NCBI GenBank assembly: GCA_002269645.1
Contig: NIVC01001374.1
Coordinates: forward strand, 186,001 to 250,000
Direction: 5' to 3'
Length of the DNA stretch: 64,000 nt
From: Macrostomum lignano
Taxonomy: Eukaryota
Shown here: one piece after another, positions 4,698-64,000 of the stretch
Numbering within the stretch: position 1 is the stretch's first letter
Layout of the letters: each line of letters opens with the position of its first letter
Position numbers and translations under genes: made by a program
Notes under the pieces: model-generated
What the model was told of the DNA's origin: nothing
The model's database searches: none
What the model saw: only the letters and a program-made list of their open reading frames with translations

Positions 4698-6612
4698 TCA
4701 CGCGGTTTGTTTGTCAATACCAAGATAAGCTTTCGCTCCACCAGCGAGACCCGTTCTGTCGGGATCAATTGTTTGAGCTGTCGGATCACTTTTTCCGGAT
4801 TTGGATAGAGCAATGCCAGCAGCTCCAGTAGCGGCCAAGCCGGTTGTGGCAGCGCCAGCACCTATGAAGCCGATTTTCTTTTTGTGTGGACCGATAGCCC
4901 CACCCGCTTTTTTAAAGAAGCCTCCGCTCTTTTTGCAGGGCAGAAACGGATTCTGGCAGCCGGGATTATCCAAGTCGGCGGACTTTTTTGATTTCCCCTT
5001 TTGAGCCGCACCGGCCTTCTTACCCACGGATTTCACCAGGCCGCCCTCGTTGCAGGGAAAAAACGGATTTTTACACCCGGGATTATCCATGTCGGTAACG
5101 CTGGACTTCCTGTTTGCGTTGCCCGGCGCGTCGCCGGCTTTCTTAGCAGATTTCAGCTTAAAAAACGATTTCGCTCGCGATTTCACTGCAAACAAGGATT
5201 GAATAGATTGTAGCAATCACAGCTACTCTCACCAACCACAGCTGCTCTCACCAATCACAGCTTCTCTCACCAATCACAGCTGCTCTCACCAATCACAGCT
5301 GCTCTCACCAATCACAGCTTCTCTCACCAATCACAGCCTGCTCTCACCAATCACAGCCTGCTCTCACCAATCACAGCTACTCTCACCAACCACAGCTGCT
5401 CTCACCAATCACAGCCTGCTCTCACCAATCACAGCCTGCTCTCACCAATCACAGCTGCTCTCACCAATCACAGCTTCTCTCACCAATCACAGCCTGCTCT
5501 CACCAATCACAGCCTGCTCTCACCAATCACAGCTTCTCTCACCAATCACAGCCTGCTCTCACCAATCACAGCTTCTCTCACCAATCACAGCTGCTCTCAC
5601 CAATCACAGCTTCTCTCACCAATCACAGCTTCTCTCACCAATCACAGCCTGCTCTCACCAATCACAGCTTCTCTCACCAATCACAGCCTGCTCTCACCAA
5701 TCACAGCCTGCTCTCACCAATCACAGCCTGCTCTCACCAATCACAGCCTGCTCTCACCAATCACAGCCTGCTCTCACCAATCACAGCCTGCTCTCACCAA
5801 TCACAGCTTCTCTCACCAATCACAGCTGCTCTCACCAATCACAGCCTGCTCTCACCAATCACAGCTTCTCTCACCAATCACAGCTTCTCTCACCAATCAC
5901 AGCTTCTCTCACCAATCACAGCCTGCTCTCACCAATCACAGCCTTCTCTCACCAATCACAGCCTGCTCTCACCAATCACAGCCTGCTCTCACCAATCACA
6001 GCTTCTCTCACCAATCACAGCTTCTCTCACCAATCACAGCCTGCTCTCACCAATCACAGCTTCTCTCACCAATCACAGCTGCTCTCACCAATCACAGCTT
6101 CTCTCACCAATCACAGCTTCTCTCACCAATCACAGCCTGCTCTCACCAATCACAGCTTCTCTCACCAATCACAGCTTCTCTCACCAATCACAGCTTCTCT
6201 CACCAATCACAGCCTGCTCTCACCAATCACAGCCTGCTCTCACCAATCACAACCTGCTCTCACCAATCACAGCTTCTCTCACCAATCACAGCTGCTCTCA
6301 CCAATCACAGCCTGCTCTCACCAATCACAGCTTCTCTCACCAATCACAGCCTGCTCTCACCAATCACAGCTTCTCTCACCAATCACAGCCTGCTCTCACC
6401 AATCACAGCTTCCCTCGACTTCACTTCCTACTAATAAAATTATTGAATTTCTCAGACATTCAATGTGCAAATTAATAATAAAGCATTATTTCCATAAACT
6501 CGATAAACTCACATGATTTTACTGCTTTCGGGCAGCATTGGCCGCCGCTTGGAAACTGGCTGACAATCGTGAGCAGAATAAAGTAAATTGCTATAAAGCT
6601 TTGAGTTCGCAT
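4698..6612 (-). CDS. Secreted cationic protein A0, 195 aa, two exons (6612-6513, 5185-4698)
   Basis: Exon 1 MRTQSFIAIYFILLTIVSQFPSGGQCCPKAVKS (signal peptide) with phase-1 GTGAGT donor; acceptor ttgtttgcag; exon 2 continues in frame: K-rich, two DNPGCxNPFxPC repeats, Gly/Ala-rich hydrophobic stretch IGFIGAGAATTGLAATGAAGIAL. Confidence 0.8.
5215..6412. repeat. 19-20-bp minisatellite (ctctcaccaatcacagc[tt/ctg]), ~60 copies, in the A0 intron
   Basis: Direct tandem periodicity visible in the sequence. Confidence 0.97.
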
Positions 6613-15265: not shown

Positions 15266-16337
15266 TTGTGGGTCAATATCGTACGTCAATATCAGTCACT
15301 TCGCCCTGGAGTGCACCCTGGCCAAAGTCCTAACACCATCCTTCGAAACCGCATTCAACCCATCATCAACCAGAGGCTTCTCAATATCCAGAACGGCTTC
15401 CGACCTGGACGGTCAACAGCAAAAACAAGTCGCTGCGGTCCGGTGCATCATAGACACCTGCAAGACTCGCCAAAAGGCGGTGTCAATTGTTTTTGCAGAT
15501 TTGTGCAAAGCTTTTGACTCAGTCAGCCGGGCGGCCAGGCCATTGCGTAGCTCCTCCAGCAGCATGGAGTTTATCAGATGCTGGTCCAGGCGATCATGGA
15601 CCTCTACAGCTCATCCAAGGCGCTTTCGTCTAGACTGACCACGGCCCTAAAGCTGAATTGACAACCACTTCCGCAAAGCGACACCTGTTTGTATTCGTCA
15701 TCCTGATCGACTTCGTCATGCGGTTGGCTCTGCGCGATGAAGACGGCTATGAAGTGGTGTTTCGCCGTAGCTCCCGCTTTGCCTGCGTCAAGCCGACCTG
15801 CCTCGCCTGCGCCGACGACCTGGCGCTGACCTGCTGCAGTCCCGAAGCTGCGCAGACGGCGGTGAGTCGGCGGACCAACGAGGGGAAGCGCGTGGGGCTC
15901 CACATCAACTACGGCAAGGCAGAGGTGCTGCATGTTGGCATTGCCAACTCTCCACTGCTGCTTCTGCCGGACAGCAACACCATCGCCCTGTGCAACCAGT
16001 TCAAGTATCTGGGGTGTCCTGGTCTCTGACCCGGATGTCATTGTCAACAACCGCAAGCACAGCCTGGTGGGCCTCCCACCTTCTCCGCTCCATCTTCAAC
16101 TACTGGCTCGCCACCGACAGCCTGAACGTCGCCCTATTCCGCTCGGCAGTTGAGACGGTGCTGACCTACGGGCTGCTGGAAACTGTTCCCATGACTGCCA
16201 CTCGTCAGGCGAGCTTGGAGGGCTGCCATCGCCACCTCATGCACAATGCCCTGGGCATCCGGTTCCCCGAGCGCGTGAGCAACGCCGAGCTGGCGGCCCG
16301 GACCCGCGTGGTCGCAGAGACGACGCCAGATGTCTGA
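15266..16337 (+). mobile_element. Degenerate non-LTR retrotransposon (LINE) reverse transcriptase fragment
   Basis: Frameshifted RT motifs QNGFRPGRST, VFADLCKAFDSVSR, ACADDLAL, GLHINYGKAEVL, QFKYLG and LFRSAVETVLTYG. Confidence 0.85.
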
Positions 16338-16492: not shown

Positions 16493-17238
16493 ATCGCAGA
16501 AGTGCGCCAAAATGAACTAGTTGAATTAGTGGGACATCGCAGAAGTGCGCCAAAAAGAAGTAGTTGAATTAGTGGGACATCGCAGAAGTGCGCCAAAATG
16601 AACTATTTGAATTAGTGGGACATCGCAGAAGTGCGCCAAAATGAACTAGTTGAATTAGTGGGACATCGCAGAAGTGCGCCAAAAAGAAGTAGTTGAATTA
16701 GTGGGACATCGCAGAAGTGCGCCAAAATGAACTAGTTGAATTAGTGGGACATCGCAGAAGTGCGCCAAAATGAACTAGTTGAATTAGTGGGACATCGCAG
16801 AAGTGCGCCAAAAAGAACTAGTTGAATTAGTGGGACATCGCAGAAGTGCGCCAAAAAGAACTAGTTGAATTAGTGGGACATCGCAGAAGTGCGCCAAAAT
16901 GAACTAGTTGAATTAGTGGGACATCGCAGAAGTGCGCCAAAAAGAACTAGTTGAATTAGTGGGACATCGCAGAAGTGCGCCAAAAAGAACTAGTTGAATT
17001 AGTGGGACATCGCAGAAGTGCGCCAAAATGAACTAGTTGAATTAGTGGGACATCGCAGAAGTGCGCCAAAAAGAACTAGTTGAATTAGTGGGACATCGCA
17101 GATGTGCGCCAAAATGAACTAGTTGAATTAGTGGGACATCGCAGAAGTGCGCCAAAATGAACTAGTTGAATTAGTGGGACATCGCAGAAGTGCGCCAAAA
17201 TGAACTAGTTGAATTAGTGGGACATCGCAGAAGTGCGC
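16493..17238. repeat. 43-bp minisatellite (cgcagaagtgcgccaaaatgaactagttgaattagtgggacat), ~17 copies
   Basis: Direct tandem periodicity with high identity. Confidence 0.97.
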
Positions 17239-23905: not shown

Positions 23906-24634
23906 TGAAATAAAAGTGCAACAAAGAAAACAGTAAATAAAATCAGAACTGTAAAATCAGTTAACCATCTTATTTAACAGATTACAGACTAGTTGAAAGC
24001 ATAAATTCCGGTATTGGATTAGTGGAACACAAACAATTATCACCTGAAAATCGTGTCAAGACTATTTTTAGATCGCATGACTGATGACTCATAATTGATA
24101 AAATTTATATTACACAAATTTCGTGTTTCAAATGACAATAACAATTAAATAATTTTGGCAGCAAACTGCAAGACAATGCAATAAAACATTTGTACAGTTG
24201 ATGATATGATGATAGATCAGCATTATTGGTTGACAAAGACACACAGATAGCCCGAAAAAAACGCTTTTTTGTGTACATCAATCTATTCGGCATTTAGCAC
24301 AAGGCTCAGCTTTGATATTCAATACCGTGCTGTGGATGACAAACTATTAAATATATCTGATTATTTATTATGAACACAAACTAATTGTACACATATTTGA
24401 ACAGTTTGGTCTATTGTGAGCAATAATAAAGTAGTTCCCAAGAACTCATCGAATACCAAATATTTAATTTATAGGCTGGGGCCTAATAAATATATAAATA
24501 TAATTACTGACTTCTGGGTTGACAAATTAAGGACAAGTTAAACTGGAATAAGAACTTGGAGAGCCGTACAAGCGCATCCTTGTGAACACCGGCTATCGTT
24601 GTGCTTGAGTCAGCTTGACATTTACTGGGATATG

Positions 24635-25785
24635 GATAGAATGGGATCAGGATAGAATGGGATCAGGATAGTTTGGAATCAGGATACAATGGGATCAGGA
24701 TACAATGGGATCAGGATAGAATGGGAACAGGATAGAATAGGATCAGGATAGAATGGGATCCGGATAGAATGGGATCAGGATAGAATGGGATCAGGATAGA
24801 ATGGGATCAGGATAGAATGGGATCCGGATAGAATGGGATCAGGATAGAATGGGATCAGGATAGAATGGGATCAGGATAGAATAGGATCAGGATAGAATAG
24901 GATCAGGATAGAATGGGATCCGGATAGAATGGGATCCAGATAGAATGGAATCAGAATAGAATGGGATAAGAATAGAATGGGATCAGGATAGAATGGGATC
25001 AGGATAGAATGGGATCAGGATAGAATAGGATCAGGATAGAATGGGATCAGGATAGAATGGGATCAGAATAGAATAGGATCAGGATAGAATGGGATCAGGA
25101 TAGAATGGGATCAGGATAGAATGGGATCAGGATAGAATAGGATCAGGATAGAATGGGATCAGGATAGAATGGGATCAGGATAGAATGGGATCAGAATAGA
25201 ATAGGATCAGGATAGAATGGGATCAGGATAGAATGGGATCAGGATAGAATGGGATCAGAATAGAATAGGATCAGGATAGAATGGGATCAGGATAGAATGG
25301 GATCAGGATAGAATGGGATCAGGATAGAATAGGATCAGGATAGAATGGGATCAGGATAGAATAGGATCAGGATAGAATGGGATCAGGATAGAATGGGATC
25401 AGAATAGAATAGGATCAGGATAGAATGGGATCAGGATAGAATGGGAGCAGGATAGAATGGGATCAGGATAGAATGGGATCAGGATAGAATAGGATCAGGA
25501 TAGAATGGGATCAGAATAGAATGGGATCAGGATAGAATGGGATCAGGATAGAATGGGAGCAGGATAGAATGGGATCAGGATAGAATGGGATCAGGATAGA
25601 ATAGGATCAGGATAGAATGGGATCCGGATAGAAATGGGGTTAGAATAGAATGGGATCAGGATAGAATGGGAGCAGGATAGAATGGGATCAGGATAGAATG
25701 GGATCAGGATAGAATGGGATCAGGATAGAATGGGATCAGGATAGAATGGGATCAGGATAGAATGGGATCGGATAGAATAGGGTCA
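24635..25785. repeat. 16-bp minisatellite (ggatagaatgggatca), ~70 copies
   Basis: Direct tandem periodicity. Confidence 0.97.
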
Positions 25786-30799: not shown

Positions 30800-33700
30800 A
30801 AAGAAGCGTCATGTAAAAATCATAGAAGCGTCATGTAAAAAATCATAGAAGCGTCATATAAACAATCATAGAAGCGTCATGTAAAAAATCATAGAAGCGT
30901 CATGTAAACAATCATGGAAGCGTCATGTAAACAATCATAGAAGCTTCATGTAAAAAATCATAGAAGCGTCATGTAAAAAATCATAGAAGCGTCATGTAAA
31001 CAATCATAGAAGCGTCATGTAAACAATCATAGAAGCGTCATGTAAACAATCATAGAAGCGTCATGTAAACAATCATAGAAGCGTCATGTAAACAATCATA
31101 GAAGCGTCATGTAAAAAATTATAAGAAGCGTCATGTAAACAATCATAGAAGCGTCATGTAAACAATCATAGAAGCGTCATGTAAAAAATCGTAGAAGCGT
31201 CAAATAAAAATCATAGAAGCGTCATTTTAAAAATCATAGAAGCGTCATATAAAAACCATAGAAGCGTCATTTTAAAAATCATAGAAGCGTCATGTAAAAA
31301 ATCATAAAAGCGTCAAATAAAAATCATAGAAGCGTCATTTAAAAAATCATAGAAGCGTCAATATGTAAAGAATCATAGAAGCGTCATGTAAAAAATCGTA
31401 GAAGCGTCATATAAAAATCATAGAAGCGCCATTTAAAAAATCATAGAAGCGTCATGTAAAAAATCATAAGAAGCGTCATGTAAACAATCATAGAAGCGTC
31501 ATTTAAAAAATCATAGAAGCGTCAATATGTAAACAATCATAGAAGCGTCATGTAAAAAATCGTAGAAGCGTCATATAAAAATAATAGAAGCGCCATTTAA
31601 AAAATCATAGAAGCGTCATGTAAAAAATCATAAGAAGCGTCATGTAAACAATCATAGAAGCGTCATATAAAAATCATAGAAGCGTCATATAAAATATCAT
31701 AGAAGCGTCATGTAAACAATCATAGAAGCGTCATGTAAACAATCATAGAAGCGTCATGTAAACAATCATAGAAGCGTCATGTAAAAAATCATAGAAGCGT
31801 CATGTAAACAATCATAGAAGCGTCATGTAAACAATCATAGAAGCGTCATGTAAACAATCATAGAAGCGTCATGTAAACAATCATAGAAGCGTCATGTAAA
31901 CAATCATAGAAGCGTCATGTAAACAATCATAGAAGCGTCATTTAAAAAATCATAGAAGCGTCATGTAAACAATCATAGAAGCGTCATGTAAAAAATCGTA
32001 GAAGCGTCATATTAAAATCATAGAAGCGTCATGTAAAAAGTCATAGAAGCGTCATGTAAACAATCATAGAAACGTCATGTAAAAAATCGTAGAAACGTCA
32101 TATAAAAATCATAGAAGCGTCATTTAAAAAATCATAGAAGCGTCATTTAAAAATCATAGAAGCGTCAATATGTAAACAATCATAGAAGCGTCATGTAAAA
32201 AATCGTAGAAGCGTCATATAAAAATAATAGAAGCGCCATTTAAAAAATCATAGAAGCGTCATGTAAAAAATCATAAGAAGCGTCATGTAAACAATCATAG
32301 AAGCGTCATGCAAACAATCATAGAAGCGTCATGTAAAAAATCATAGAAGCGTCATGTAAACAATCATAGAAGCGTCATGTAAACAATCATAGAAGCGTCA
32401 TGTAAAAATCATAGAAGCGTAATTTAAAAAATCATAGAAGCGTCATGTAAACAATCATAGAAGCGTCATGTAAACAATCATAGAAGCGTCATGTAAAAAT
32501 CACAGAAGCGTCATTTAAAAAGTCATAGAAGCGTCATGTAAACAATCATAGAAGCGTCATTTAAAAAATCATAGAAGCGTCAATATGTAAACAATCATAG
32601 AAGCGTCATGTAAAAAATCGTAGAAGCGTCATATAAAAATAATAGAAGCGCCATTTAAAAATCATAGAAGCGTCATGTAAAAAATCATAAGAAGCGTCAT
32701 GTAAACAATCATAGAAGCGTCATATAAAAATCATAGAAGCGTCATATAAAATATCATAGAAGCGTCATGTAAACAATCATAGAAGCGTCATGTAAACAAT
32801 CATAGAAGCGTCATGTAAACAATCATAGAAGCGTCATGTAAAAAATCATAGAAGCGTCATGTAAACAATCATAGAAGCGTCATGTAAACAATCATAGAAG
32901 CGTCATGTAAACAATCATAGAAGCGTCATGTAAACAATCATAGAAGCGTCATGTAAACAATCATAGAAGCGTCATGTAAACAATCATAGAAGCGTCATTT
33001 AAAAAATCATAGAAGCGTCATGTAAACAATCATAGAAGCGTCATGTAAAAAATCGTAGAAGCGTCATATTAAAATCATAGAAGCGTCATGTAAAAAGTCA
33101 TAGAAGCGTCATGTAAACAATCATAGAAACGTCATGTAAAAAATCGTAGAAACGTCATATAAAAATCATAGAAGCGTCATTTAAAAAATCATAGAAGCGT
33201 CATTTAAAAATCATAGAAGCGTCAATATGTAAACAATCATAGAAGCGTCATGTAAAAAATCGTAGAAGCGTCATATAAAAATAATAGAAGCGCCATTTAA
33301 AAAATCATAGAAGCGTCATGTAAAAAATCATAAGAAGCGTCATGTAAACAATCATAGAAGCGTCATGCAAACAATCATAGAAGCGTCATGTAAAAAATCA
33401 TAGAAGCGTCATGTAAACAATCATAGAAGCGTCATGTAAACAATCATAGAAGCGTCATGTAAAAATCATAGAAGCGTAATTTAAAAAATCATAGAAGCGT
33501 CATGTAAACAATCATAGAAGCGTCATGTAAACAATCATAGAAGCGTCATGTAAAAATCACAGAAGCGTCATTTAAAAAGTCATAGAAGCGTCATGTAAGC
33601 AATCATAGAAGCGTCATGTAAAAATCATAGAAGCGTCATGTAAAAAATTATAGAAGCGTCATGTAAACAATCATAGAAGCGTCATGTAAACAATCATAGA

Positions 33701-34070
33701 AGCGTCATGTAAAAAATCGTAGAAGCGTCATGTAAACAATCATAGAAGCGTCATGTAAAAAATCGTAGAAGCGTTATTTAAAAAAATCATAGAAGCGCCA
33801 TTTAAAAAATCATAGAAGCGTCATGTAAAAAATCATAGAAGCGTCATGTAAACAATCATAGAAACGTCATGTAAACAATCATAGAAGCGTCATGTAAACA
33901 ATCATAGAAGCGTCATGTAAACAATCATAGAAGCGTCATGTAAATAATCATAGAAGCGTCATATAAAAATCATAGAAGCGTCATGTAAAAAAATCATAGA
34001 AGCGTCATGTAAAAATCATAGAAGCGTCAAGAAAAAATCATAGAAGCCTCATTTAAAACTAATGAAAGTG
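30800..34070. repeat. 22-23-bp satellite (atcatagaagcgtcatgtaaaca), ~140 copies
   Basis: Direct tandem periodicity over ~3.3 kb. Confidence 0.98.
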
Positions 34071-34954
34071 TCATTTAAAAAATTAAGAAGCATCATGGTA
34101 GAATAAAAGAAGCGTCATGTCAGACATGAAGGGTGTCATGTAAAAATTAAATGCAGCTATAATGCTGAGCTGGGAGAAAAACTGAGACGTCAAGGCTCTC
34201 AGAGAATAACTGAGATTACGGGGGGGGGGGGTTTCTGAGATGTCAAAGCAAAAGTCAGAAGCTACTTCAAAGTTCATGTACTTTACTCAATTTTTTTATT
34301 GCATTCTTCGTTGGCTCGCCACAGGGGGGCGCTGATAGAAGAAGAGTCATGTAAAAAATAAAAGTAGCACTATGTATACATAAAAGAAAAGTCATGTCGG
34401 AGTTAAAAGATTCATCTGGGAATTGCTACGATGTCAAAGCTTGGTGGAAATCGTTATAGTGCTGTGATTCTTAAAGAAGGAATCACTAAAATGTCAAGGC
34501 TTAGGGGAGAAGAATTGCTGAGATTTCAAGGCTTTAGGTTGGGTTAAAGTTAGGTTTAGGTCAGGTTTGGGTTGAGGGTTAGATTTTATCGGGTTTCAAG
34601 GTTAACAGGGGATTTTTTAGATTTCAAGGTTTATGGGGGCCATCGCTGACATGTCAAGGCTTACGGGGGGAATAGCTGAGATGTCAAGGCTCACGGGGGT
34701 ATAAATGAGATTTCAAGGCTAAAGTCAGAAGCTACATGTAGTTTATTGAAAACTTTTTATTACATTATTTGATGCCTCCTCAGGGGAGGGATCGCTGATA
34801 AAAAAAGCGTAACGTAAAAAATAAAAGAAGCTTCATGTCGAAGTTAAGAGATTCATTTGGGAATCCCTACGATGTCGAGGCTTGCAGGGAATCGCTATAA
34901 TGCTGTAGTAGTGCTATTATGACTCTTAGAGAGAATTACTGGAATTTCAATGCT

Positions 34955-41755: not shown

Positions 41756-44700
41756 ATGGAAGCGTCAGCAAAAGCGAATATTTCAAAAATAGCGGAAGCT
41801 CTACATTCACAAACAAACTGTGAGTAACAATGCGAAAAAGATATAGAGTTGCAGTGGTCCCCTACTAAAACATGCAGGGGTCATTGACATTTCACGTAAA
41901 AATCAGAAAGCCGCAGAAATCAGATTGATCTTTCCCACTTCCCACGCAGCCAGACTGGCTTTCTGCTCGCTCGGACTACTTATTAAGTAGACGTAGATAT
42001 AAATTACACTTAATTAGGTCAAGTCCGTTGGCTCATGTAGGTCTATGATGTCACACATCATTAATTTCGAAGGGAAAGCATGATACAAATTAAATTGGTA
42101 CGAGCAGGAGTATCAAAAGCAGTACATCTCAGTCATTAGTAACGAGAGATCGCTGAAATTCCGCAGTTACTTTATTTTCAATCATGTCTGACCATCTGAC
42201 GATTCAGTTTTGTAAAAAATTAAGTGCCTACAATTTCAGTTACAAAAAAGGAATGCGAGCACCTCTTGAACATGTACAAAGACATTACTGGCGGTGCAGA
42301 TGATGCTAAACTAGACAGAAATAAGTTCAAGGACATCTTGCACAATTCGTTCGGCATGACAGACGATTTGATGATGGACCAAGGTAACAAACTTTTTTTA
42401 GAATTAATATATTTTTTTCAAAAATCATAATACATCAGACATTTACACGCGAAAATGATGCTTCAGTATTTCGAGCCTTCGACACAGACTCCGACTCCAA
42501 CATCAGTCAGGAAGAGTGGCTCAAAGGCATTTCAACGTTTCTCAGAGGCACATTGGAAGAGAAAACCAGTTGTACGTAAGAATTCCGCTTTTAGCCATGC
42601 AGTATGAGGTTATGATTACAAGTTCCCAGGATTTGCACCTAGCTATTTTGCCCCCCAATCATAACAAATTGACTATTTCTCGCGGTTTCAGTTGCATTCC
42701 GAGCGTACGATCTCAACTCGGATGGAGTCATCAGCAGGGACGAGATGTTTCAGCTGCTGAAGTCAACTCTGATTAGGGTGAGTAGCTATATTTAAACGAT
42801 TTTGGGTTTCAATTGTCGTCTGAATAGTAAAAATGTTCCTATTAACTCTTATGTTGAACATATTTAAATGCTTCTATCTACCCGAGATAAAATCTTTAAA
42901 CTTAGCGCAATAATCAACTTCAGCAAGAAGACGATCAGATATAGCTATTTATAAAATTGGCTCTGATTTTTTCACCCTGTGTTATTACCAAATCTATTCC
43001 TGTCGAAAGCCTAAATTACGATTTGCAATTTATAAATTTATACAATTATATTAACAAATCCTACCAAACCCACCTTAGGGAAGCCTGGACTACGTAAGTG
43101 CTGTCTCGTATTTGCTAGATAAAGTTCCAAACTTGCTGTAATTTTTTATGGTTCAACACACACGTCATACGCATGTCTGAATGCAGCAATTGCAAGATGT
43201 GAACAATTTGCACAATTTTGATAATAAATTAAACTTGCACTTGGAATCTCGTTTTCTTAGAAGTTTCATTCAATTCAATCCAGTTGTACTGCGCCTATGG
43301 CCTACTAATGATTTATTGTATTTGCTATGGGTCACTTTTTTGGCATTAAATTCCTAGACTCGTGAAAAATACTAATTATCATCGGCTATATTAGTCATTT
43401 TAATCGGCATGTTTGCTTGATAAAGTACTTTCCTTGCGCAATATTCTCCTGATATGAACGCGTTATGGACCTGAACATCGGCTGTTTAAACTGCAAAGTT
43501 AAATTCATTGAACTTGCACAAAAATAGCAAAAATTCACTGCCTGTCACAAAAAAATTTAAGAACTTCTTTTCAAATTGTTGCTAATGTTTCGAATAAATT
43601 TGAAGCAGATTCAGAATTCCATGTATGGTTTTAGACTGGAAACTTAAAGCAGAAATACCTGTTTAAACAGTGTATTAAAACAAAAACAAACTTTAAATTT
43701 CAGCAACCCGTGGAAGAGGATCCCGACGAGGGTGTCAGGGACCTGGTGGAGATTGTCTTCAAAAAGTTTGTGAGTAATTTTAGTAACGGAGCAAACAAAT
43801 AATAACAATAATTTTTATTAAAACTTAAGTCAGAAGTCGCATTCTAAAGCGACAATTTTCATTTGACGTTAGCGTAATTAATTGCGACTTCGTAGATGGG
43901 CGGAATCTATACGTATTTATTAAACAGATATATCCTTTATCTGTTTAGTAAAATTTAATGATATAGTAAATAATTCAAAGGAAATTTGACTAATCAAAAT
44001 TATGTAAGTCCATACAAGCACTCCTTTCTTTAGAGAAGATCTGTCTTTATATGTGACGTCTTTGCATTGCGCGGTCTTTTTACCATAGACATTCTCATTG
44101 GGCCATGAACCGCCTATCACGACCCTTAATTACAAGATTTAAAAAATTATTTAAGAAATCCAGCATTTAATTCAGGACCCTGCCAACATAGATGAACCTG
44201 GAATAACATGGATTGCTTATCTTAAATTTGGAATTGTCTATGGTCTAAGCCGTGTATTGGGAGAGCATTGAATTTAATGCTCTGCCTTTGCCTGTGCCAT
44301 TGACCATAGATAGTGTTTGACCATAGACGGTGATTTGACCATAGACGGTGTTTTGACCATAGACGGTGTTTTAACCATAGACAGGGTTTTAAGTTGACCA
44401 TAGATGGTGTTTTGACCATAGACGGTGTTTTGACCATAGACGGTGTTTTAACCATAGACAGGGTTTTAAGTTGACCATAGATGGTGTTTTGACCATAGAC
44501 GGTGTTTTGACCATAGACGGTGTTTTAACCATAGACAGGGTTTTAAGTTGACAATAGATGGTGTTTTGACCATAGATGGTGTTTTGACCAGAGACGGTGT
44601 TTTGACCATAGACGGTGTTTTTACTGTGCATGTAGGTAGATGAAAGTAATATGACTGGTAGTGGTCTTAAATGAATGCTCAAATTCTTAAATATATCAAG

Positions 44701-54748: not shown

Positions 54749-57700
54749 TTGAGATTGGTCTGCAAGCAAGACTTTTATAGCCAATCAGACTCCAGTCCAA
54801 ACCCACCCCATCAAAACCATGCAGACTCCGACAGCGCCACTGCTCTGATAGACCGCAGCGAGTCTCTGCCTGTTGATGATTTCGGGCTAAGTGACCGGCT
54901 GCGCCTGTTGAGCAAGCAGTCAGCTGCAACCTCCGGTCAGCACTCCCAGACCCCGCCTGAGCCACAGCCGAGAACGCGCCGTCCGGATTTGAAAGCTATG
55001 CGGGCCTTTAAATCGCTCGACACCTCATCATCCGTGGCAGCACCTGCCAACTCGGCAGCCGCAGCCTCCTCTTCTGTGTGCACCTCCGCGTCTCCTCCAA
55101 ACCGCAAGTCGTCAAAATCGATGGAGTCGTGCACGGAATTTTCCGGCTACTCTTCCCAGGGCCAGAAGCAGCAGGACAGTCCAAGCAGGAATTCTTCCAA
55201 AGTGCGCCGCTGGCCCAGCCTGAGGTCCCGCATCGGCTCCCGCCTTGGCTCCCTTCGAAGGCAGCAGACTCTCCAGCAGAATCCTTCGCTGCAGTCTCTG
55301 CAGCAGCCATCGAACGGATTGCAACAGCAGCAACAGCAGCAATGCATTCAGCCCGATTGCATTGAGAAATGCGACTCTAACAGCCAACTAGACGATGCTG
55401 CAGTGCTGGAGACGGGCTGTGAATTGCCCGAAGATCAGAAGCAGAGCACGTCCAGCTACCTGAAAGAGCAGTTCTTTGCCTTCTTCCAGCCGTCGGACAA
55501 CAAGCTGGCAATGAAGCTGTTTGGCAATAAAAACGCTCTGTTAAAAGAGAAGCAGAGACAGCAGCAGTCTGGCAAATGGATCATTCATCCGTGCAGCAAC
55601 TTTCGGTAAGGCGTGAAGTCAGTATTTATTTAACATTGGCTGTTAGTCAATTGTCCAAGCAATTTGTAGTTTTACTCTAATTATACACGTATAGCAACTA
55701 TGCTTGGCTCGGCTTCCAGTAACTAAAGCATGAACACTGTAGTCACGACTCTTCAATGCTCTTCCACTCTCTCAACCCATGGGCCTAATTAACCTGACTG
55801 TCCATCATTCGTCATCACGCTTCTCTCCTGTCTAGAGTTGGCGGGCTACTAGACAGTTGGGTAATTTCCATTTCAAAACACAGCACCAAGGCTCTTTATC
55901 ATCGCTACCGATGTAGATGCTATTGTTGTGCTATTTGTCAACTTGCCTACCATCTAGCTATGGAAAGTTCCTCCACTCATTCAGGCACTTCACTCTCGCT
56001 ACATTCCTCCAGCTGCCGGGTGGACCGGGTGGAATTCTTTGTTTCACTTCTTTCCATTGCGGAAAGCTACGCAAAACATGCATCAAAGGCGAACATACGC
56101 GGCTCCCGCAGAGCCGCTTGAAAATTATTTTAATGAGCCTGACAGACAAGGCGCATGAGACATTGTTCTTTATTTAATAGTACAATTTCATTTGCAGTTA
56201 GCTCTCGCATTCTGAAAATTAAGCAAAGAAGAGTTTTAGACAGACTTCAATGGAAATGCATCACCGCTTCCTCCTTTGTGACTCTCAGTTTCTACTGGGA
56301 CCTCCTGATGCTGATCCTCCTGATAACCAACTTGGTTGTGCTACCGGTGGCGATATCGTTCTTCAACGACGACCTCAGCGCGCATTGGATCATATTTAAC
56401 TGCTTGTCCGACACCATCTTTTTAAGCGATATTGCCGTCAACTTTCGAACCGGTTTGTTTCCAGACTTTTCCTTCACCTGTGAAAGACACGATGCTCTCT
56501 ATACTTCCTATTTAAGCATCTAAATTTTATCAAATATTGCAGGCGTAATAACAAACGACTTCGCGGACGAAATCATACTGGATCCAAAGCTGATAGCTCA
56601 ACACTACGTCAAGTCGTGGTTCTTTCTCGATCTAGTGTCCTCTATTCCAATGGATTATATATTTTTGGCTCTGAATCAGCGAGGCAATGTTAGCCAACTG
56701 GTACATGCGGGTGAGTTTAACAGCTGCCACTACCTATGCCGATATCTCACCATGAGAGTGGTCAAGGACAAGTGCACCAATGGTGCCCCATTTTTTTCAC
56801 TCTGATGTAGAAGTGAAATAAACCTAAACCAACTTAACCGCACAGCTCCAAAGCCCATCAAATCCTTGCTCATCCAGGTCGAGCGCTGAGGATCCTACGT
56901 CTAGCCAAGTTGCTCAGCCTGCTAAGACTGCTACGGCTCTCGCGATTGGTTCGCTATGTCAGCCAATGGGAAGAGGTGAGTGGATTTTATTATCAAAGCT
57001 GCAAATTCTTTTATATGACACTATTGCGATATTGCGTCTCAATATCATGCAGATACTAGGATATTTTTAAACGCCCATAATTCATCAATTGTAATTACTG
57101 TAACAACACCTTGTTTACTGCAGTACATTGGTACATTTCTAACACATGTCACTTGCATAAAACATTTTACTACATTTTCCGAGTCGCCAGTATTTAGAGC
57201 ACTAAAATGTAACGTAAGAAATCAATATAAATTTCAGCTATTGCAAGTTGCAACAAAGTGCCTTGGAATAGTAAAGCTGATTCTAATAATGCTGCTCCTT
57301 GGCCACTGGAACGCTTGCCTCCAATTCCTTGTGCCGTTTCTCAACGACTTCCCAGACGACTCTTGGGTAACCAAGGAAGGATTAAAGGTGAAGCCGCAGT
57401 TCACTGCAATCGGTAGACCCGGGCAATTCACGAATACCGGATGATGTTCGCACGCTCGCTTAGCGCATACTAGATGCCGATACTAGAACCTGCCTAGTTT
57501 TGCAATAACTCCAAGCCTAATTGGCTGTTTGTGTTAGCCTGACTTCGATAATGAGACTTCGATAGTGTTTTTCTGAGGTTGGAATTAAAATGCTACTAGC
57601 TACGAAGATTATATAAAAAAATAAGTCTTGATTATGAAATGCAAAGGTAAGCAGCAGAGAGAAGCCAAAGTATTTCTTTTGTCAGCCAAGTTAATAGTTA

Positions 57701-60700
57701 GGCCAACCAAGTTAAGACTTCCCATTTGGCAGCAGTAGATTTGGCCTTGCCCAGAGACTGAGACATAGACGGGAAAGGCAGCATAATTTCTATAAGACGT
57801 TGCTACTGGCATCCTTATTTTGCTGATGTCTATGGCCAAATTATCAACTTGGTTGCCTTTTTCCCGACAAGCAAGAATTAAGCTAGTGTCGTTGGTAGAG
57901 TAGAGACAACCGACTTCTAATTTGACTAACTGAAATTCGTCAGCTAAGATTAAGACGTCCTTAGCTCAGACGCTCAGACCTTTACTGCATTCTGCTCGGG
58001 TAGGAAACGCATGTGTCTTGGGTAAAAAAGCTTACCAATTTCACTTCAAATTCGAAGAAATAAGTGAGCTTCTGTGTCTCTACAGCCAGCCTGTATTCCT
58101 GTCTCCCTCTCACCCTATATCTTTCTGCCACTCTCGTGTCATGCTTTGCTTTGCATCATAATGCAACAAAATCAATCATTTCGTAACTTAGGTACTTAGG
58201 TAGGTGGCGGTTATTCAATTGTAAGTTGATGTTCATTCGCTGTTAGCTGCTCCATGGCAACATATAGCTACATACTGACGAATTTGACTCTGTAGAATTT
58301 GAAATCGAAACGGTATAATCAACAACAACACTGAATAAAAAACGACAGCTCTAAATTTAATTGACGCAATGACTGACTAGCACCAATTAATTTGACTGCG
58401 TTAACCGGATGTCGGCAAAAACTCAATGATTTAACTAAATTTAACTAGGCGATAAGTTCAGGAAAACAAATAACATTATCGATAAATCCTCAGCTAAAAG
58501 TACTCACACCACAAGAAAATATAAAAAAAATCTATAAATTCTCAAATGTACACAATGCTTATTATTTCAAAAAGGTTTTTTGAAAAATTATCGACCGATT
58601 TCAAAGTGAACTTTATTTAAAATCCTGTTCAAAGCTGTGATGACTGATTCACTGTAAAAAGGCTAGAACTATGCATAACATTTTTCCACTCTTTCACCAT
58701 CTTATGTTGCAGCTGCTGAACATAGCAAATAAGTTCATAGGCATATTTAACCTAGTACTGCTGATGCTGCTGCTGGCCCACTGGAATGCCTGCTTGCAGT
58801 TCTTAATCCCGCTACTGCAAGACTTCCCTGATCAGTCTTGGGTGGCCGTTTGCAATTTGAAGGTGACTTAAGAGTGGTCATTTGTATCTGTACGAGTCAG
58901 TGTACCTGCCATCACTGCTCATGTGTTCAGAATCCAATTATGATTTTGCCAAGACTCTGAGTCAAAAAGTGTGCTAAATCTATTTGAATATCCTTTTAAT
59001 TTGATTCCAAGCATGTCATGTCATCTTATGTCGAAAACCGAGTACAGTTCGAGTAGTTGATACTAAAAAAATTAGCAAAAGTTTTCACTGACCCGTATGA
59101 TATAAGATAGGTAAATTACCCCAAATGAAAGCATTAAAACTTCTTCAAAAAAGAAACAAGATTAGGATTTGTAGCTCCCAGATAAATAATGTTTTGAACA
59201 CAGAAACCTAAGTTGGGCCTAAGACTAATAACGAATTACTTAAACAAATCTTGGTTACGTTGTTTGCATTTTTAAACTGACTGGATTTACTAAACATAAA
59301 GTAATGCAATTACTCAATCTTTTCACTGTCGGAAAAAGTTATTAACTTTATGTTTTGTGCAATAAGGCACCTGCATCATTAATATGCTGGCACTATGACA
59401 TAAATAAGCGCAAGCCACAGTAAGCACTCGCGCTAATGTAACCCCCGTTTCAGCTGTTGAATGTAGCCTCCGTGTTCATTCGTGTTGTCAATCTGGTCTG
59501 TCTGATGCTGCTGCTAGCGCACTGGAACGGCTGCTTGCAGTTTCTTGTACCGTCGATACAAGACTTTCCCAAAGACTCCTGGGTTAGGAAGCTGAACATT
59601 CAGGTACCCATCACTGCATTAAAAATATATATCTATAATTTTGTTCAGCTGTTCTCTTCAGTAGACCAACAAGTTTTTACAATTATTGATTTATATATAG
59701 ATATTTAGGCGATAGCAGTCCACAGCAAACTGTAGACTCTGTAGAGTGCTATAGCGTCAGTCTAATTAGTTTTCAAATTAAATTATAGCATCGGACTCAT
59801 TTGATCAACAAACCAGGCTCCCTTAGGTGGTACAGTTTAAAGTACATTTACACACTGCATCCCTCCACGTAGATACAGAGAATAGAATATAGTGTCATGA
59901 ATTTTTAGATGTCTTCCACTCCTGCCATTTGCCTGCCAATTTTTGTTGTAAGCGATAAATTATTCCTATTTATGCATAATCTTTATTCCTAACTTCTGTC
60001 GAATGTTTAAATCTTTGTTTGCTGCGCTGCATATAGATGTTATTATATATTGCCTCTATAGTTTTATGATTCAAATATAGAGTTGATTGAGATTTACCGC
60101 CATCGAAAATGCATTATACTGACATTACGAGTACCGAACTGATACGGCGTTGTCTCCATCTTTACTTGTAGGACGCACACTGGTTCCGACAGTACACCTG
60201 GGCTCTGTTCAAGGCCATGAGCCACATGCTGAGCATTGGCTACGGCCAGCACCCGCCAACCAGCATTAGCGAGGCCTGGATCACCATCGTCAGCATGATG
60301 ACCGGCTCGTCGTGCTACGCTCTCTTCGTCGGCCACGCCGCGGCACTGATACAGAGCTTCGACACGTCCAAGCGAATGTATCGGGAGAAAGTGAGCTCGG
60401 GGGATAACGTCTTAATAATGTTGTAGCAATATCTTAGTTTGCTCTGTTAATTACTTCCCGGGGAAGTGTGTCCTCCCGGAGAATGTCTTCATCGTCACAG
60501 ATTGATACTGCAAGGCATTGAAAATATTGCTGATATTTTATCATCAAAGTGCTCCGAATTTTAATGAAACAGAAACGGAAATAAAAAATCTGATTAGGAT
60601 GGTGAAGACTCTTTAGCTACCTCTATAATTGTTCTTCAGGCCTTTTTTAGTTATCAGGCTTCTCCTTTAATAACTATACAGTATACGGAACCCTATTTGG

Positions 60701-62353
60701 TGATAGACTACTCCAGCGTCATCTAATTACATTTAGCAACTAATCAAAGCAATAACCGGCGCTATCCTATCGCAATTCACAGTTCAAACAAGTGGAGGAA
60801 TACATGGCCTACCGGAAGCTTCCTAGAGCTCTTCGTCAGAGGATAGCGAACTACTATGAGCACCGCTATCAGGGGAAGATGTTCAACGAGAATGACATTC
60901 TCAGCGAGCTCTCCGAATGTCTCAGAGAGGTATGAGCTCCCAACCAACTGCTCATTGGTTGGTTCGTTACGAGCGTACAACCACTATAAAAATAAATGTA
61001 GTAAAGATGTCAGCAAACGAATAATAATTATCAAGAGATGTTAAAACGAAAATAAAGTTACTCTACAAAAATAGGCCTGTAACTTTTTTTCGACCAATTG
61101 AGACTGTTAATGAAGTGACTTCTATCTGGTCCTTGCATGCGAATTGCGTCCGTGTCTCTAACCCGCAGCAAATCATCAACTACAACTGTCGGGCTCTGGT
61201 TGCCGCAGTTCCATTCTTCACCTACGCCGATCAGGATTTCGTATCCGAGGTGGTCACCAGACTGAAGTACGAAGTATTCCAACCCGGAGATCTCATCATT
61301 AAGGAGGGCACGATTGGAACTAAAATGTACTTTATTCAAGAGGGCATTGTGGATATAATTACTAAAGATGGCGAAGTGGCAACCAGTCTGTCGGACGGCT
61401 CATACTTTGGAGGTGAGTTCCACCCACTCATTAGAGAAAAGTTACTCTGATGAGTTACTCTGTGCTTGTACCTTTTTATTTCTATTGAGGATAAAACAAT
61501 CAAGCAAGGATTACATGAAATAATGATGAGACGGGAGTGCTTGCTTTTCAGCGGAAGTTAAAATTTGCAATTAACTCATGGATATATTGGACGCATGTTC
61601 ACTGACTTGAATTAATTAACATGATAAGTCACTCATGACAGGACATAGCACCAGCCAAGAGATATTTCAGACAGCCTTTTTTTTCATTTTCGACGTCCCG
61701 ATGAAGGATATCCTCAACGCAACCTATAAAGCATGGATTCTTAGCATGATCGGTCTTAATTAAAAGGATCGATAGACGCCCTGCCATTTACAGGCTTCCA
61801 CAGGCTTTGAAGTCACAGTTAAATTTCAATATTTGCAATACGCAGCTTCATTTGTCTCGCTTCTTTCACAGAAATCTGCCTGCTGACAAATGCCAGACGC
61901 GTCGCAAGCGTTCGCGCTGAGACCTACTGCAATCTGTACTCCTTGGAGAGGGAAAACTTCCTCTCCGTGCTCGACAATTACCCGCTCATGAGGCGCACGA
62001 TGGAGTCAGTGGCCGCCGAACGGCTCAGCAAAATTGGACAAAATCCACAACTGGTGAGCAACCGCGCCGACCTCAAGGAGGACCTCAATCTAGTCAAGGA
62101 GATCGTCGACCAAGCTGCCGCCGCGGCCGCCGAGGAGGCCGATTCTACCGACAATTCCGACGATTGCGACGGAGGTCATTCAGCCTCGTCATCCTATCAG
62201 CGATCCCGGACGCCGACCCCGACGCCAGCCTACCAGCAAAAGCCGTCATGGGAGGCGACTACATCGTCAGGAGCGGCGTTGACAATGCCCGGCGGAGAGC
62301 GGCGGAAGTCTGTAGTGCGGCTCGGTCTGGAGAAACTGGGAATTGCCAGGTAA
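54749..62353 (+). CDS. HCN: HCN (Ih) hyperpolarisation-activated cyclic-nucleotide-gated channel; exons ~54781-55605, 56289-56452, 56543-56710, 56878-56975, [57238-57387 | 58713-58862 | 59454-59603], 60172-60390, 60783-60929, 61169-61412, 61872-62353
   Basis: HCN domain ([15 protein letters not shown]...[14 protein letters not shown]), S4 [32 protein letters not shown], pore IGYG, C-linker [17 protein letters not shown]...GSYFGEICLL...RRVASVRA. The first coding exon(s) and the extreme C-terminus are unresolved. Confidence 0.95.
57238..57387 (+). CDS. HCN: HCN alternative S4-S5/S5/turret exon X1 (150 nt)
   Basis: tttcag acceptor, GTGAAG donor, phase 0/0; [50 protein letters not shown]. Confidence 0.85.
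58713..58862 (+). CDS. HCN: HCN alternative S4-S5/S5/turret exon X2 (150 nt)
   Basis: ttgcag acceptor, GTGACT donor, phase 0/0; [50 protein letters not shown]. Confidence 0.88.
59454..59603 (+). CDS. HCN: HCN alternative S4-S5/S5/turret exon X3 (150 nt, closest to canonical)
   Basis: tttcag acceptor, GTACCC donor, phase 0/0; [50 protein letters not shown]. Confidence 0.9.
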
Positions 62354-64000
62354 TAAATCCCTTTGTATAATATATAAATAGCTTTGGATAGCCTTTAGTA
62401 GCTTTCTGCGTTCTTGTGGCTTGGTAGTTCATGCTGATACAACAAGTATTTGAGTATTTGAGTTCGATTCCGTGAGCAATAGCGAAATGAAGCTGGGGCG
62501 GTTCGACTGTCGCTTTGTTTTGTGCAAGGGCCCAGTGTGACGTACGAGTCGATTTTATTTATTACGCTGTGAATTAGCTTTCAAAATATTTGCTTCAGTA
62601 ACCAGTAATAACAAACAAGACGACTCGCAAAAACTACAAGCATAATTTAAATTGGTTGGAGAAAACCAGCTTATTAAACCTAAACTAACTACAAAAAACG
62701 ATAATAATCCAAGAGACATAAATTAATGAAATCCAAAGTAAATTGTTGTCAAAATAACTTACATAAAAGCAATAAGTATATATTAAAAATTGTTTAACTT
62801 ACAAACTAATTTAAATACCTTAATTAGCATGAACCTAAAATAATTGTTATAACGACCAAACTGACGACGTAATTATATCAGAGACCACCTCAGTAAACAA
62901 ACTACAAGCTTATAAGCAGCAACGATTTTAGTACATTTGCGGGTCTGCAATCGTAGATAACGAACTTCCAGTGTAACTCAATACCGATGTCCATGTTAAC
63001 CAGGAACCGGTTTAGTGGCCGCAGACGCCACCACCAGCAACAGCAGCAGGGGCAGCAACAGGAGGACCAAGAGGGAGACGAGTCGCAGGCCCAGCAGGTC
63101 GAGCTGGAGCCGCTGTCTTCGCCACCACCCTATGCGACGACAACGACCTGCCGTGTCGAAATTAACCACGAATGACAGCTGTACTGGTATATTTTTTAAA
63201 TTTCAAAGCTTAAAGAAAACTTCAGAAAATGTTGTTTTATTTTTTTCTGCCACAATCAACCAAAATTAGCGAAACAATAAGGTTTGAGGCTATAAGAAAC
63301 GAGTAATATTAATTAATTACTTTCAGTGTAAGAATTCTGTTTAAAGGAAGATGAAAAGCCAAAAAAACAAAAAATCAAAATTAGGAATGAATACATATTA
63401 TTTGTTTCTCCTATTTTTGCAATCTAAAAATACGCATTGGTAGTAAATTTTCCTCAAGTTTTATTTGCATTCTCTTGTTAAAAAAGTAATCCGACACGAC
63501 GTCATGAGTTATTCATAATCCACGAAGAAACACGTACGTTTAAAAAAGTTTAAACCAAAACCAATCGCGCGAATTAAAAGTCTACACGCACTGCTTTTAG
63601 TAGCAACCAACAAAATAATTTTTGCTATTTTCAACAAGACATTTGTTTGTTTATTTCTTGTTCGAACAATGAGCGATAAATTTCTGTCTCCGACGAAACT
63701 CGTGGCCATTCATATCGAAATTTGTTACACCAACTTTGTAAACGCGATTAAAACTGTCTTTGAGATGCTATCTATCTATATTTAATAAAGTCTAATTAAC
63801 AAAAGTAATCTACTATTCTAGTCACCTATTTTGCATACAGAATTTGCTGCCACGGCACATCATAAGTCAGCCTACAACAGCACTAATAAGTATTATATTT
63901 GAGCACTTTATGTGTAATAATTGAGGACATTCCACATCCCCAATGAAATAAAGCTTCCCAGTGCTCAATGCTTCGATTATTAAACCCCGTTCATTCATGT

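Follow-up and report, generated by a model that had tools for sequence, protein, structure and literature searches.

An HCN channel gene in the Macrostomum window

The window analysed in this study is a stretch of 64,000 nucleotides from the Macrostomum lignano assembly GCA_002269645.1 (contig NIVC01001374.1, positions 186,001 to 250,000 of the forward strand), and all coordinates given below count from its first letter. It carries a gene for an HCN (Ih) channel in which three homologous exons, designated here as X1, X2 and X3, lie in tandem between the exon encoding S4 and the exon encoding the pore and S6. These exons, and what they may mean for the gating of the channel, are the subject of the present report; an original prediction, made from the sequence, had already proposed that X1 and X2 replace conserved gating residues of the HCN family. 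The exons of the gene were joined by hand and the splice sites were then checked. The 5' limit of 54998 is provisional and corresponds to the first in-frame ATG of the N-terminal exon. The features of the gene are as follows.

54998..63175, forward strand: HCN (Ih) channel gene, from the exon model, Pfam and the HCN4/HCN1 alignment
ends 55605, forward strand: N-terminal exon, with the end ..IHPCSNFR
56289-56452, forward strand: S1-S2 exon
56543-56710, forward strand: S3 exon
56878-56975, forward strand: S4 exon, shared, ending ..QWEE in phase 0, with the Trp and two Glu facing S5
57238-57387, forward strand: X1 exon, Gly and Lys type, ..HWNAC
58713-58862, forward strand: X2 exon, Gly and Asn type, ..HWNAC
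59454-59603, forward strand: X3 exon, canonical Arg and Asn type, ..HWNGC
60172-60390, forward strand: pore/S6 exon, shared, with the SIGYG filter and with ..IQSFD.. near its end
60783-60929, 61169-61412 and 61872-62349, forward strand: C-linker and cyclic-nucleotide-binding domain exons
63004-63175, forward strand: last coding exon, with the C-terminal tail and a TGA stop

With any single X exon, the product contains the Pfam domains Ion_trans_N (PF08412, 82 bits), Ion_trans (PF00520, 89 bits) and cNMP_binding (PF00027, 71 bits) in that order, each above its cut-off, and HMMER aligns it end to end with the structures of human and rabbit HCN4 and human HCN1 (E ~1e-187). S4 is long, has a basic residue at every third position and closes with QWEE; the filter of the CIGYG type is represented by SIGYG, in which GYG is retained, and the cyclic-nucleotide-binding Arg (ARRVAS) is present. 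By these features the gene product is an HCN channel, for which opening on hyperpolarization and modulation by cyclic AMP are predicted. The closest database protein is an HCN of Macrostomum lignano (1158 bits), to which the core is ~97 % identical while the tails differ, and the window is therefore from a close relative or another copy and not from that exact locus.

Some further observations were made on the same protein family. A second M. lignano HCN paralogue (P0312, P0318) is ~82 % identical to the window protein, and its fragmentary models show an X3-like, Arg-type segment only. The Cys-to-Ser change in the filter (SIGYG, exon 60172-60390) is common to all flatworm HCNs fetched. SIGYG is followed by QHPP where most HCNs have CIGYGR, and this QHPP was seen only in Macrostomum sequences.

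Three homologous exons and the closed-state lock

All three X exons have a length of 150 nucleotides, canonical AG and GT borders and phase 0 on either side. They match one another in tblastn at E-values of 3e-17 to 3e-20, with an amino-acid identity of 56-64 %, and a tblastn search of the 64-kb window for a fourth or degenerate copy found none. They encode a module that runs from the last part of the S4-S5 linker through S5 into the first half of the turret. When the product is aligned with HCN4 and HCN1 by HMMER, the Arg of X3 corresponds to R339 of HCN2, R297 of HCN1 and R367 of spHCN, and the Asn of X3 and X2 falls by alignment at the position of spHCN N370, where X1 has Lys. Counted from the Trp of QWEE, the gene has Arg at +12 and Asn at +15, equal to the W355/R367/N370 numbering of spHCN, and the same Trp-Arg-Asn spacing is found in a sea-urchin-type sequence from the hit list.

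These positions belong to a lock that holds the channel closed. Its Arg, at the N-terminal end of S5, is present in X3 (59481-83), which has Val three residues upstream (59472-74). X1 and X2 have Gly in place of this Arg (57265-67 and 58740-42, respectively), with a Lys three residues upstream (57256-58 and 58731-33). The Asn one turn above the Arg is present in X2 (58749-51) and X3 (59490-92) and is replaced by Lys in X1 (57274-76). The partners are kept in every isoform, as they are encoded by shared exons: the S4-end Trp-Glu, with the Trp of QWEE at 56967-56969, and the S6-end Asp of SFD at 60361-60363, which is equivalent to D443 of HCN2 and D401 of HCN1. Around the Trp, the residues of the S4 exon are 100 % identical to those of the M. 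lignano protein.

On this anatomy the original prediction stands. Its limits of 57238 and 58862 coincide exactly with the start of X1 and the end of X2 in the checked exon model, and its assignment of Arg and Asn to X3, Gly and Asn to X2 and Gly and Lys to X1 is borne out by translation and codon positions. The formal alignment that it had proposed as a check, carried out by HMMER against HCN4/HCN1 together with the spHCN spacing, places both sites as claimed, and the Trp and Asp partners do lie in shared exons (the S4 exon and the pore/S6 exon, respectively).

A separate observation concerns residue 47 of X2 (58848-58850), a Cys in the extracellular part of the turret. This Cys47 is common to X2, M. 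lignano X2, the trematode and cestode p1 exons and Spirometra, and is absent in X1, X3 and non-flatworm HCNs.

Protein-level selection on X1, X2 and X3

Between the copies, identity is 0.82-0.88 at second codon positions, 0.62-0.66 at first and 0.36-0.40 at third positions, and the codons for identical residues differ in half of the cases. Conservation at position 2 combined with divergence at position 3 implies that the duplications are old and that all copies have been held under selection at the protein level. The G+C content of the X exons is 0.46-0.49, as against 0.32-0.38 for the introns.

Three M. lignano models (UniProt A0A1I8GHE7, A0A1I8HJ31 and A0A1I8I1D7) hold the same three exons in the same order. 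These models fuse X1, a truncated X2 and X3 into one protein, a fusion that almost certainly reflects misannotation of a mutually exclusive cluster. On comparison of the window with M. lignano, 49 of 50 residues are identical for X3, 37 of 50 for X1 and 35 of 43 for the part of X2 that is present; the M. lignano copies also retain the Gly and the Lys upstream of it, as well as the X1 Lys and the X2 Asn. The character of the differences was assessed by simulating random mutation to an equal number of differences (13 for X1), scoring the BLOSUM62 sum and comparing the stop-free trials. For X1, where 13 of 50 residues differ, the observed sum is +17 and random mutation gives -7.9 +/- 6.1; this value was reached in 0 of ~9,700 stop-free trials, and 51 % of trials acquired a stop codon. 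For X2 (8 of 43 residues differ) the sum is +5 against -4.7 +/- 4.7 at random (p ~0.03), with stop codons in 37 % of trials. Taken together, the codon and substitution patterns indicate that X1, X2 and X3 are all maintained coding exons under long purifying selection.

Distribution of the exon types and their possible history

Amongst 150 representatives of clusters in the family, Gly at the Arg site is confined to flatworms; the other HCNs have Arg, or rarely Lys, Gln, His or Ser. All HCNs examined from trematodes and cestodes have the Gly type as their only version of this exon. With that single exon X2 shares 78 % of its residues in cestodes and 70-72 % in trematodes, as compared with 64 % for X1 or X3. 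The state of X1, with both Gly and Lys, recurs in a cestode HCN paralogue of Spirometra and Mesocestoides (AGKFIGI[SL]KL...HWNAC).

A cluster of the X type was sought at six loci (three trematode and cestode orthologues, one cestode paralogue, a nemertean and a rotifer), and one exon was found at each. It is of the Gly type, between the S4 and pore exons, in Opisthorchis felineus, Schistosoma mekongi, Hydatigera taeniaeformis and the Spirometra paralogue, and of the Arg type in the nemertean Tubulanus and the rotifer Rotaria. Similarly, ~110 arthropod, vertebrate and other HCNs contain a single copy of the segment per protein. Mutually exclusive exons at the S4-S5/S5 site of arthropods were also considered and rejected, since the ~100 arthropod isoforms fetched share one identical Arg-type segment, VYFLNMASVFMRIFNL.

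Neighbour-joining on the 50-residue segments placed all exons of the Gly type, namely X1, X2 and those of the parasites, in one group with 72 % bootstrap support and the X3 exons in another with 100 %; a pair formed by Macrostomum X1 and X2 only received 13 %. The most economical reading of these short sequences from few taxa is that Arg-type and Gly-type exons coexisted before the split of Macrostomorpha and Neodermata, and that the parasites kept the Gly type only. Macrostomum appears to preserve an intermediate state, with ancestral and derived exons side by side.

A different kind of variation was noticed at the same intron position in other spiralians. Tubulanus (P0004; locus L004, 48008-51723) and oysters (P0006, P0135) have 6-17 extra residues directly after QWEE, which suggests an optional micro-exon or an extended splice site in the S4-S5 linker.

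Gating residues and a model of exon choice

The two positions at which the X exons differ have been studied by mutation in other HCN channels. HCN2 R339E shows a large instantaneous current, a minimum open probability of ~43 % and a coupling energy lowered by 1.2 kcal/mol, and spHCN R367E is likewise leaky (PMC11050684). The biophysics of HCN2 R339/D443 cited in the original prediction, according to which the Arg is needed for normal closure, therefore holds. In HCN1, the R297-D401 salt bridge stabilises the closed state and not the open state (PMC11189445), and R297T and D401H are epilepsy variants (PMC4354400). For spHCN, ~25 % of the conductance is left at depolarised voltages in N370W or W355N, and the W355N and N370W double mutant opens on depolarisation, that is, with reversed polarity (PMC7078272). 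The role that the prediction gave to this site is confirmed by these effects, but its wording of a Trp/Asn pair is loose, as in the spHCN model E356 faces N370 and W355 faces F216, while R367 lies one turn below N370 and pairs with D471 (PMC7078272).

Comparison across HCN sequences qualifies what the original prediction derived from these positions. A Lys three residues before the Gly (A-x-K-x-x-G) is found in 39 of the 40 Gly-site segments of the fetched proteins, all of which come from flatworms and are not independent. Lys and Arg are found together (KFMR) in molluscs (Lymnaea, Patella, oyster), an annelid and an orthonectid, and X3 has Val at the Lys site. From this pattern it appears that, after duplication, the flatworm exons each retained one member of a pair of basic residues on the same helical face. 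As the Gly exons keep the upstream Lys and X3 keeps the Arg, the basic charge has been moved by about one helical turn and not lost. The S6-end Asp partner is conserved in the parasite HCNs that have only the Gly type, and as trematodes and cestodes have no other form, the Gly type must be compatible with a functional channel. At the Asn site, Lys is usual in the HCN-like channels of sponge, choanoflagellate and ichthyosporean, which keep the Trp-Glu/Gln-acidic end of S4. In X1 this Lys would come to lie opposite the S4 Glu, with which it could form an additional salt bridge.

In the light of the Lys three residues upstream, the Gly-only parasites and the normal occurrence of Lys at the Asn site, the suggestion of the original prediction that X1 and X2 isoforms may be leaky, shifted or altered in voltage polarity seems too simple and is partly supported. 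Reversed polarity, in particular, was considered for X1 and set aside as unlikely, because the published reversal also needs W355N, the Trp is kept here and Lys is normal in early-branching relatives.

The arrangement of the locus is that of a mutually exclusive cluster: the exons are tandem and homologous, are equal in length and phase and have canonical sites, and the segment is present once in each of the homologous proteins and genes. We consider it probable that the flatworm HCN gene carries such a cluster of three exons and that the resulting isoforms differ in how firmly they are kept closed. A given mRNA would contain a single version, out of three, of the module that consists of the end of the S4-S5 linker, S5 and the first half of the turret, and that sits between voltage sensor and gate. 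X3 would represent the ancestral bilaterian version, in which the Arg pairs with the S6-end Asp and the Asn faces the Glu of QWEE. X2 would be the flatworm-wide version, with Gly for Arg and with the Lys one turn upstream as the sole basic residue on this face, and X1 a second Gly version in which Lys at the Asn site lies opposite the S4 Glu. The upstream Lys of X1 and X2, and the possible Glu-Lys pair of X1, may partly replace the Arg-Asp lock, which leaves the direction of the effect open. Our best estimate is that the isoforms plausibly differ in closed-state stability, be it in midpoint, instantaneous fraction or kinetics, in a direction that is not predictable.

Appraisal of the model and alternative explanations

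Several observations weigh against the model of three exclusively spliced, functionally distinct exons, and they are considered here together with the alternatives on which they bear. The first set concerns the maintenance of X1 and X2. Judged by the differences between window and M. lignano, X1 (26 % changed) and X2 (19 %) have evolved 6-8x faster than X3 (2 %) and the constitutive core (~3 %). Such fast change is typical of minor-isoform exons, but it also points to weaker constraint and fits a partial relaxation. The polypyrimidine tract of X1 is, moreover, A-rich and weak-looking, that of X2 being the best of the three. The rates and the weak-looking acceptor of X1, along with the annotation of the second M. 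lignano paralogue with an X3-like exon only, would suit a gene that makes the X3 channel only, in which X1, or X1 and X2, would be decaying duplicates (pseudo-exons) that seldom or never enter the mRNA. We hold this to be very unlikely, as two lineages have preserved the frames, the exact length of 150 nucleotides and the splice sites, conservation is much higher at codon position 2 than at position 3, and the substitutions are conservative (0 of ~9,700 trials for X1; p ~0.03 for X2). Furthermore, X2 is 78 % identical to a functional exon of cestodes, and the diagnostic residues are conserved.

The second set concerns splicing. We infer the presence of one X exon per mRNA, and the use of X1 and X2 at all, from the anatomy of the cluster and the single copy in homologues. 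A search for transcripts with an 83-residue query across the X1 junction returned 5 short unrelated fragments only, and an exact look-up of the M. lignano protein found no contig. A 211-residue query of the X1 isoform brought up two further M. lignano models, which belong to the other paralogue and have X3-like sequence only. The introns of the cluster (262, 1325, 591 and 568 nucleotides) are too long for steric exclusion, and since inclusion of two or three X exons stays in frame, nonsense-mediated decay cannot enforce exclusivity either; with both routes closed, some active mechanism is expected. Pairing between docking and selector RNA elements was looked for in the four introns of this single locus by inverted-repeat and RNAduplex scans, and no convincing layout was found. 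The scans gave AT-rich matches of 12-23 nucleotides with 71-92 % complementarity and diffuse duplexes of -20 to -28 kcal/mol, which are weak; weak AT-rich complementarity was seen between 59672-59697, downstream of X3, and both 57077-57099 and 58640-58660, upstream of X1 and X2, respectively.

Retention of the frame on multiple inclusion also bears on the idea of joint inclusion of X1, X2 and X3, by which the channel would acquire three S5-like helices in tandem. The odd number of helices would keep the membrane topology, and the three M. lignano models do join X1, part of X2 and X3. These models, however, use a truncated X2 and look like ab initio artefacts, and a single copy is seen in all other HCN sequences and loci examined. 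The extra helices would also come without connecting loops and would displace the S4-S5/S5 interface, and we regard joint inclusion as extremely improbable.

The third set concerns function. For the proposed model of exclusive exon choice, the predicted gating consequence would have to be carried over from other replacements (R to E, N to W) in other species, and the upstream Lys, being retained, may largely offset the loss of the Arg. It could be that all isoforms are made and that X1 and X2 gate essentially normally, the upstream Lys pairing with the S6-end Asp and the Glu-Lys pair of X1 adding to it; the exons would then differ in some other respect, such as kinetics, lipid or phosphatidylinositol bisphosphate (PIP2) dependence, subunit assembly or the turret with its Cys47. 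In favour of this, Gly co-occurs with the upstream Lys in 39 of 40 Gly-site segments, Lys and Arg are found together in molluscs, annelid and orthonectid, the Asp partner is kept in Gly-only parasite HCNs and the Gly type is the sole exon in Neodermata, while Cys47, shared by X2, the p1 exons and Spirometra, is in keeping with a difference elsewhere. On the other hand, coupling in HCN channels is loose, such that 1.2 kcal/mol leads to a minimum open probability of 43 % (PMC11050684), and a shifted charge of shorter reach combined with a helix-weakening Gly is unlikely to be fully silent. Maintenance of the Arg type beside the Gly type under selection also suggests that they are not equivalent, and normal gating of all isoforms therefore seems rather unlikely to us. 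A bolder reading is that one gene gives a canonical pacemaker channel (X3) along with Arg-less X1 and X2 channels with a large voltage-independent or re-coupled component, and that, given the Arg-less module as the sole one in parasitic flatworm HCNs, hyperpolarization gating across the phylum may run without the Arg-Asp lock thought to be central to closure; we think of this as distinctly unlikely.

Other features of the window

The first 52 kb of the window look like satellite-rich intergenic DNA, being packed with long and fairly pure tandem-repeat arrays (5214-6434, 16493-17238, 24626-25778, 30802-34120 and many more up to ~52400), of which examples are a 19-nucleotide unit repeated 62 times, a 16-nucleotide unit repeated 72 times, a 23-nucleotide unit repeated 145 times and a 43-nucleotide unit repeated 17 times. 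Two other features were recorded.

42388-42792, forward strand: two exon-like open frames encoding an EF-hand pair (Pfam EF-hand_1 and EF-hand_7, E = 2e-12 to 6e-9), ~12 kb upstream of the HCN gene; by eye they resemble a neuronal-calcium-sensor or KChIP-like gene
15634-16026, forward strand: open frame with a weak RVT_1 match (22.5 bits, under the 29.6-bit cut-off), probably a retroelement remnant

Significance and comparison with known systems

How a conventional voltage sensor is coupled to an inverted gate in HCN channels is debated, and the interface formed by the S4 end, S5 and the S6 end is central to the question. The present gene offers three versions of this interface, tested by evolution in an otherwise identical channel, and can be seen as a natural experiment in gating. 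The residues at which its X exons differ are ones that, when mutated, render mammalian and sea-urchin channels leaky, and mutation of the Arg or Asp causes human epilepsy. The isoforms bear on whether a Lys one turn away can replace the Arg-Asp lock, and on the role of Lys at the Asn site. As the trematode and cestode HCNs found are all Arg-less, they also differ systematically from host channels in the gating region.

The closest known systems are the engineered and disease mutants of HCN2 R339-D443, of spHCN R367-D471 and N370, and of HCN1 R297-D401 (R297T, D401H), which concern the same two aligned positions, with the Arg absent in X1 and X2 and the Asn replaced in X1. Unlike those mutations, the changes in X1 and X2 are natural, conserved and encoded by exons; Gly and Lys are the replacing residues here, whereas the mutants studied carried Glu, Ala or Trp, and QWEE retains its Trp. 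X1 and X2 also carry co-varying residues, namely the Lys three residues upstream, HWNAC for HWNGC and other changes in S5 and the turret.

Amongst natural channels, X2 is matched by the Gly-type HCNs of parasitic flatworms (Schistosoma, Fasciola, Opisthorchis, Hydatigera and Anoplocephala), which read ASKFMGIFNL...HWNAC and to which X2 is 70-78 % identical, and X1 is matched by the HCNs of Spirometra and Mesocestoides with both Gly and Lys (AGKFIGISKL...HWNAC). The parasite genomes have a single exon without an Arg-type alternative, whereas the Macrostomum gene has both. A literature search on the splicing or function of flatworm HCNs found nothing, and no other HCN with an alternative S4-S5/S5 exon came up in the searches made.

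Splicing is known to diversify the arthropod Ih genes (Drosophila DMIH, lobster PIIH and honeybee AmIh), with reported effects on gating. The variation in arthropods, however, lies elsewhere than in the S4-S5/S5 segment, and no isoform among the ~100 fetched removes the Arg. Mutually exclusive exons that modify gating are familiar from other channels, as in exon 5N/5A of Nav, exon 8/8a of Cav1.2 and the exon pairs of insect para and Slo. Like the X exons, these pairs are tandem, homologous and of equal length, and they swap a transmembrane or linker segment to tune gating. Exon-swapped gating modules are thus known in other channels, and a swap of the S4-S5/S5 segment in an HCN gene, as predicted here, appears to be new within the literature searched. 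It differs from the Nav, Cav, para and Slo pairs in the channel family and in the segment concerned, and the residues that it would exchange are those which set closed-state stability and, in double mutants, polarity.

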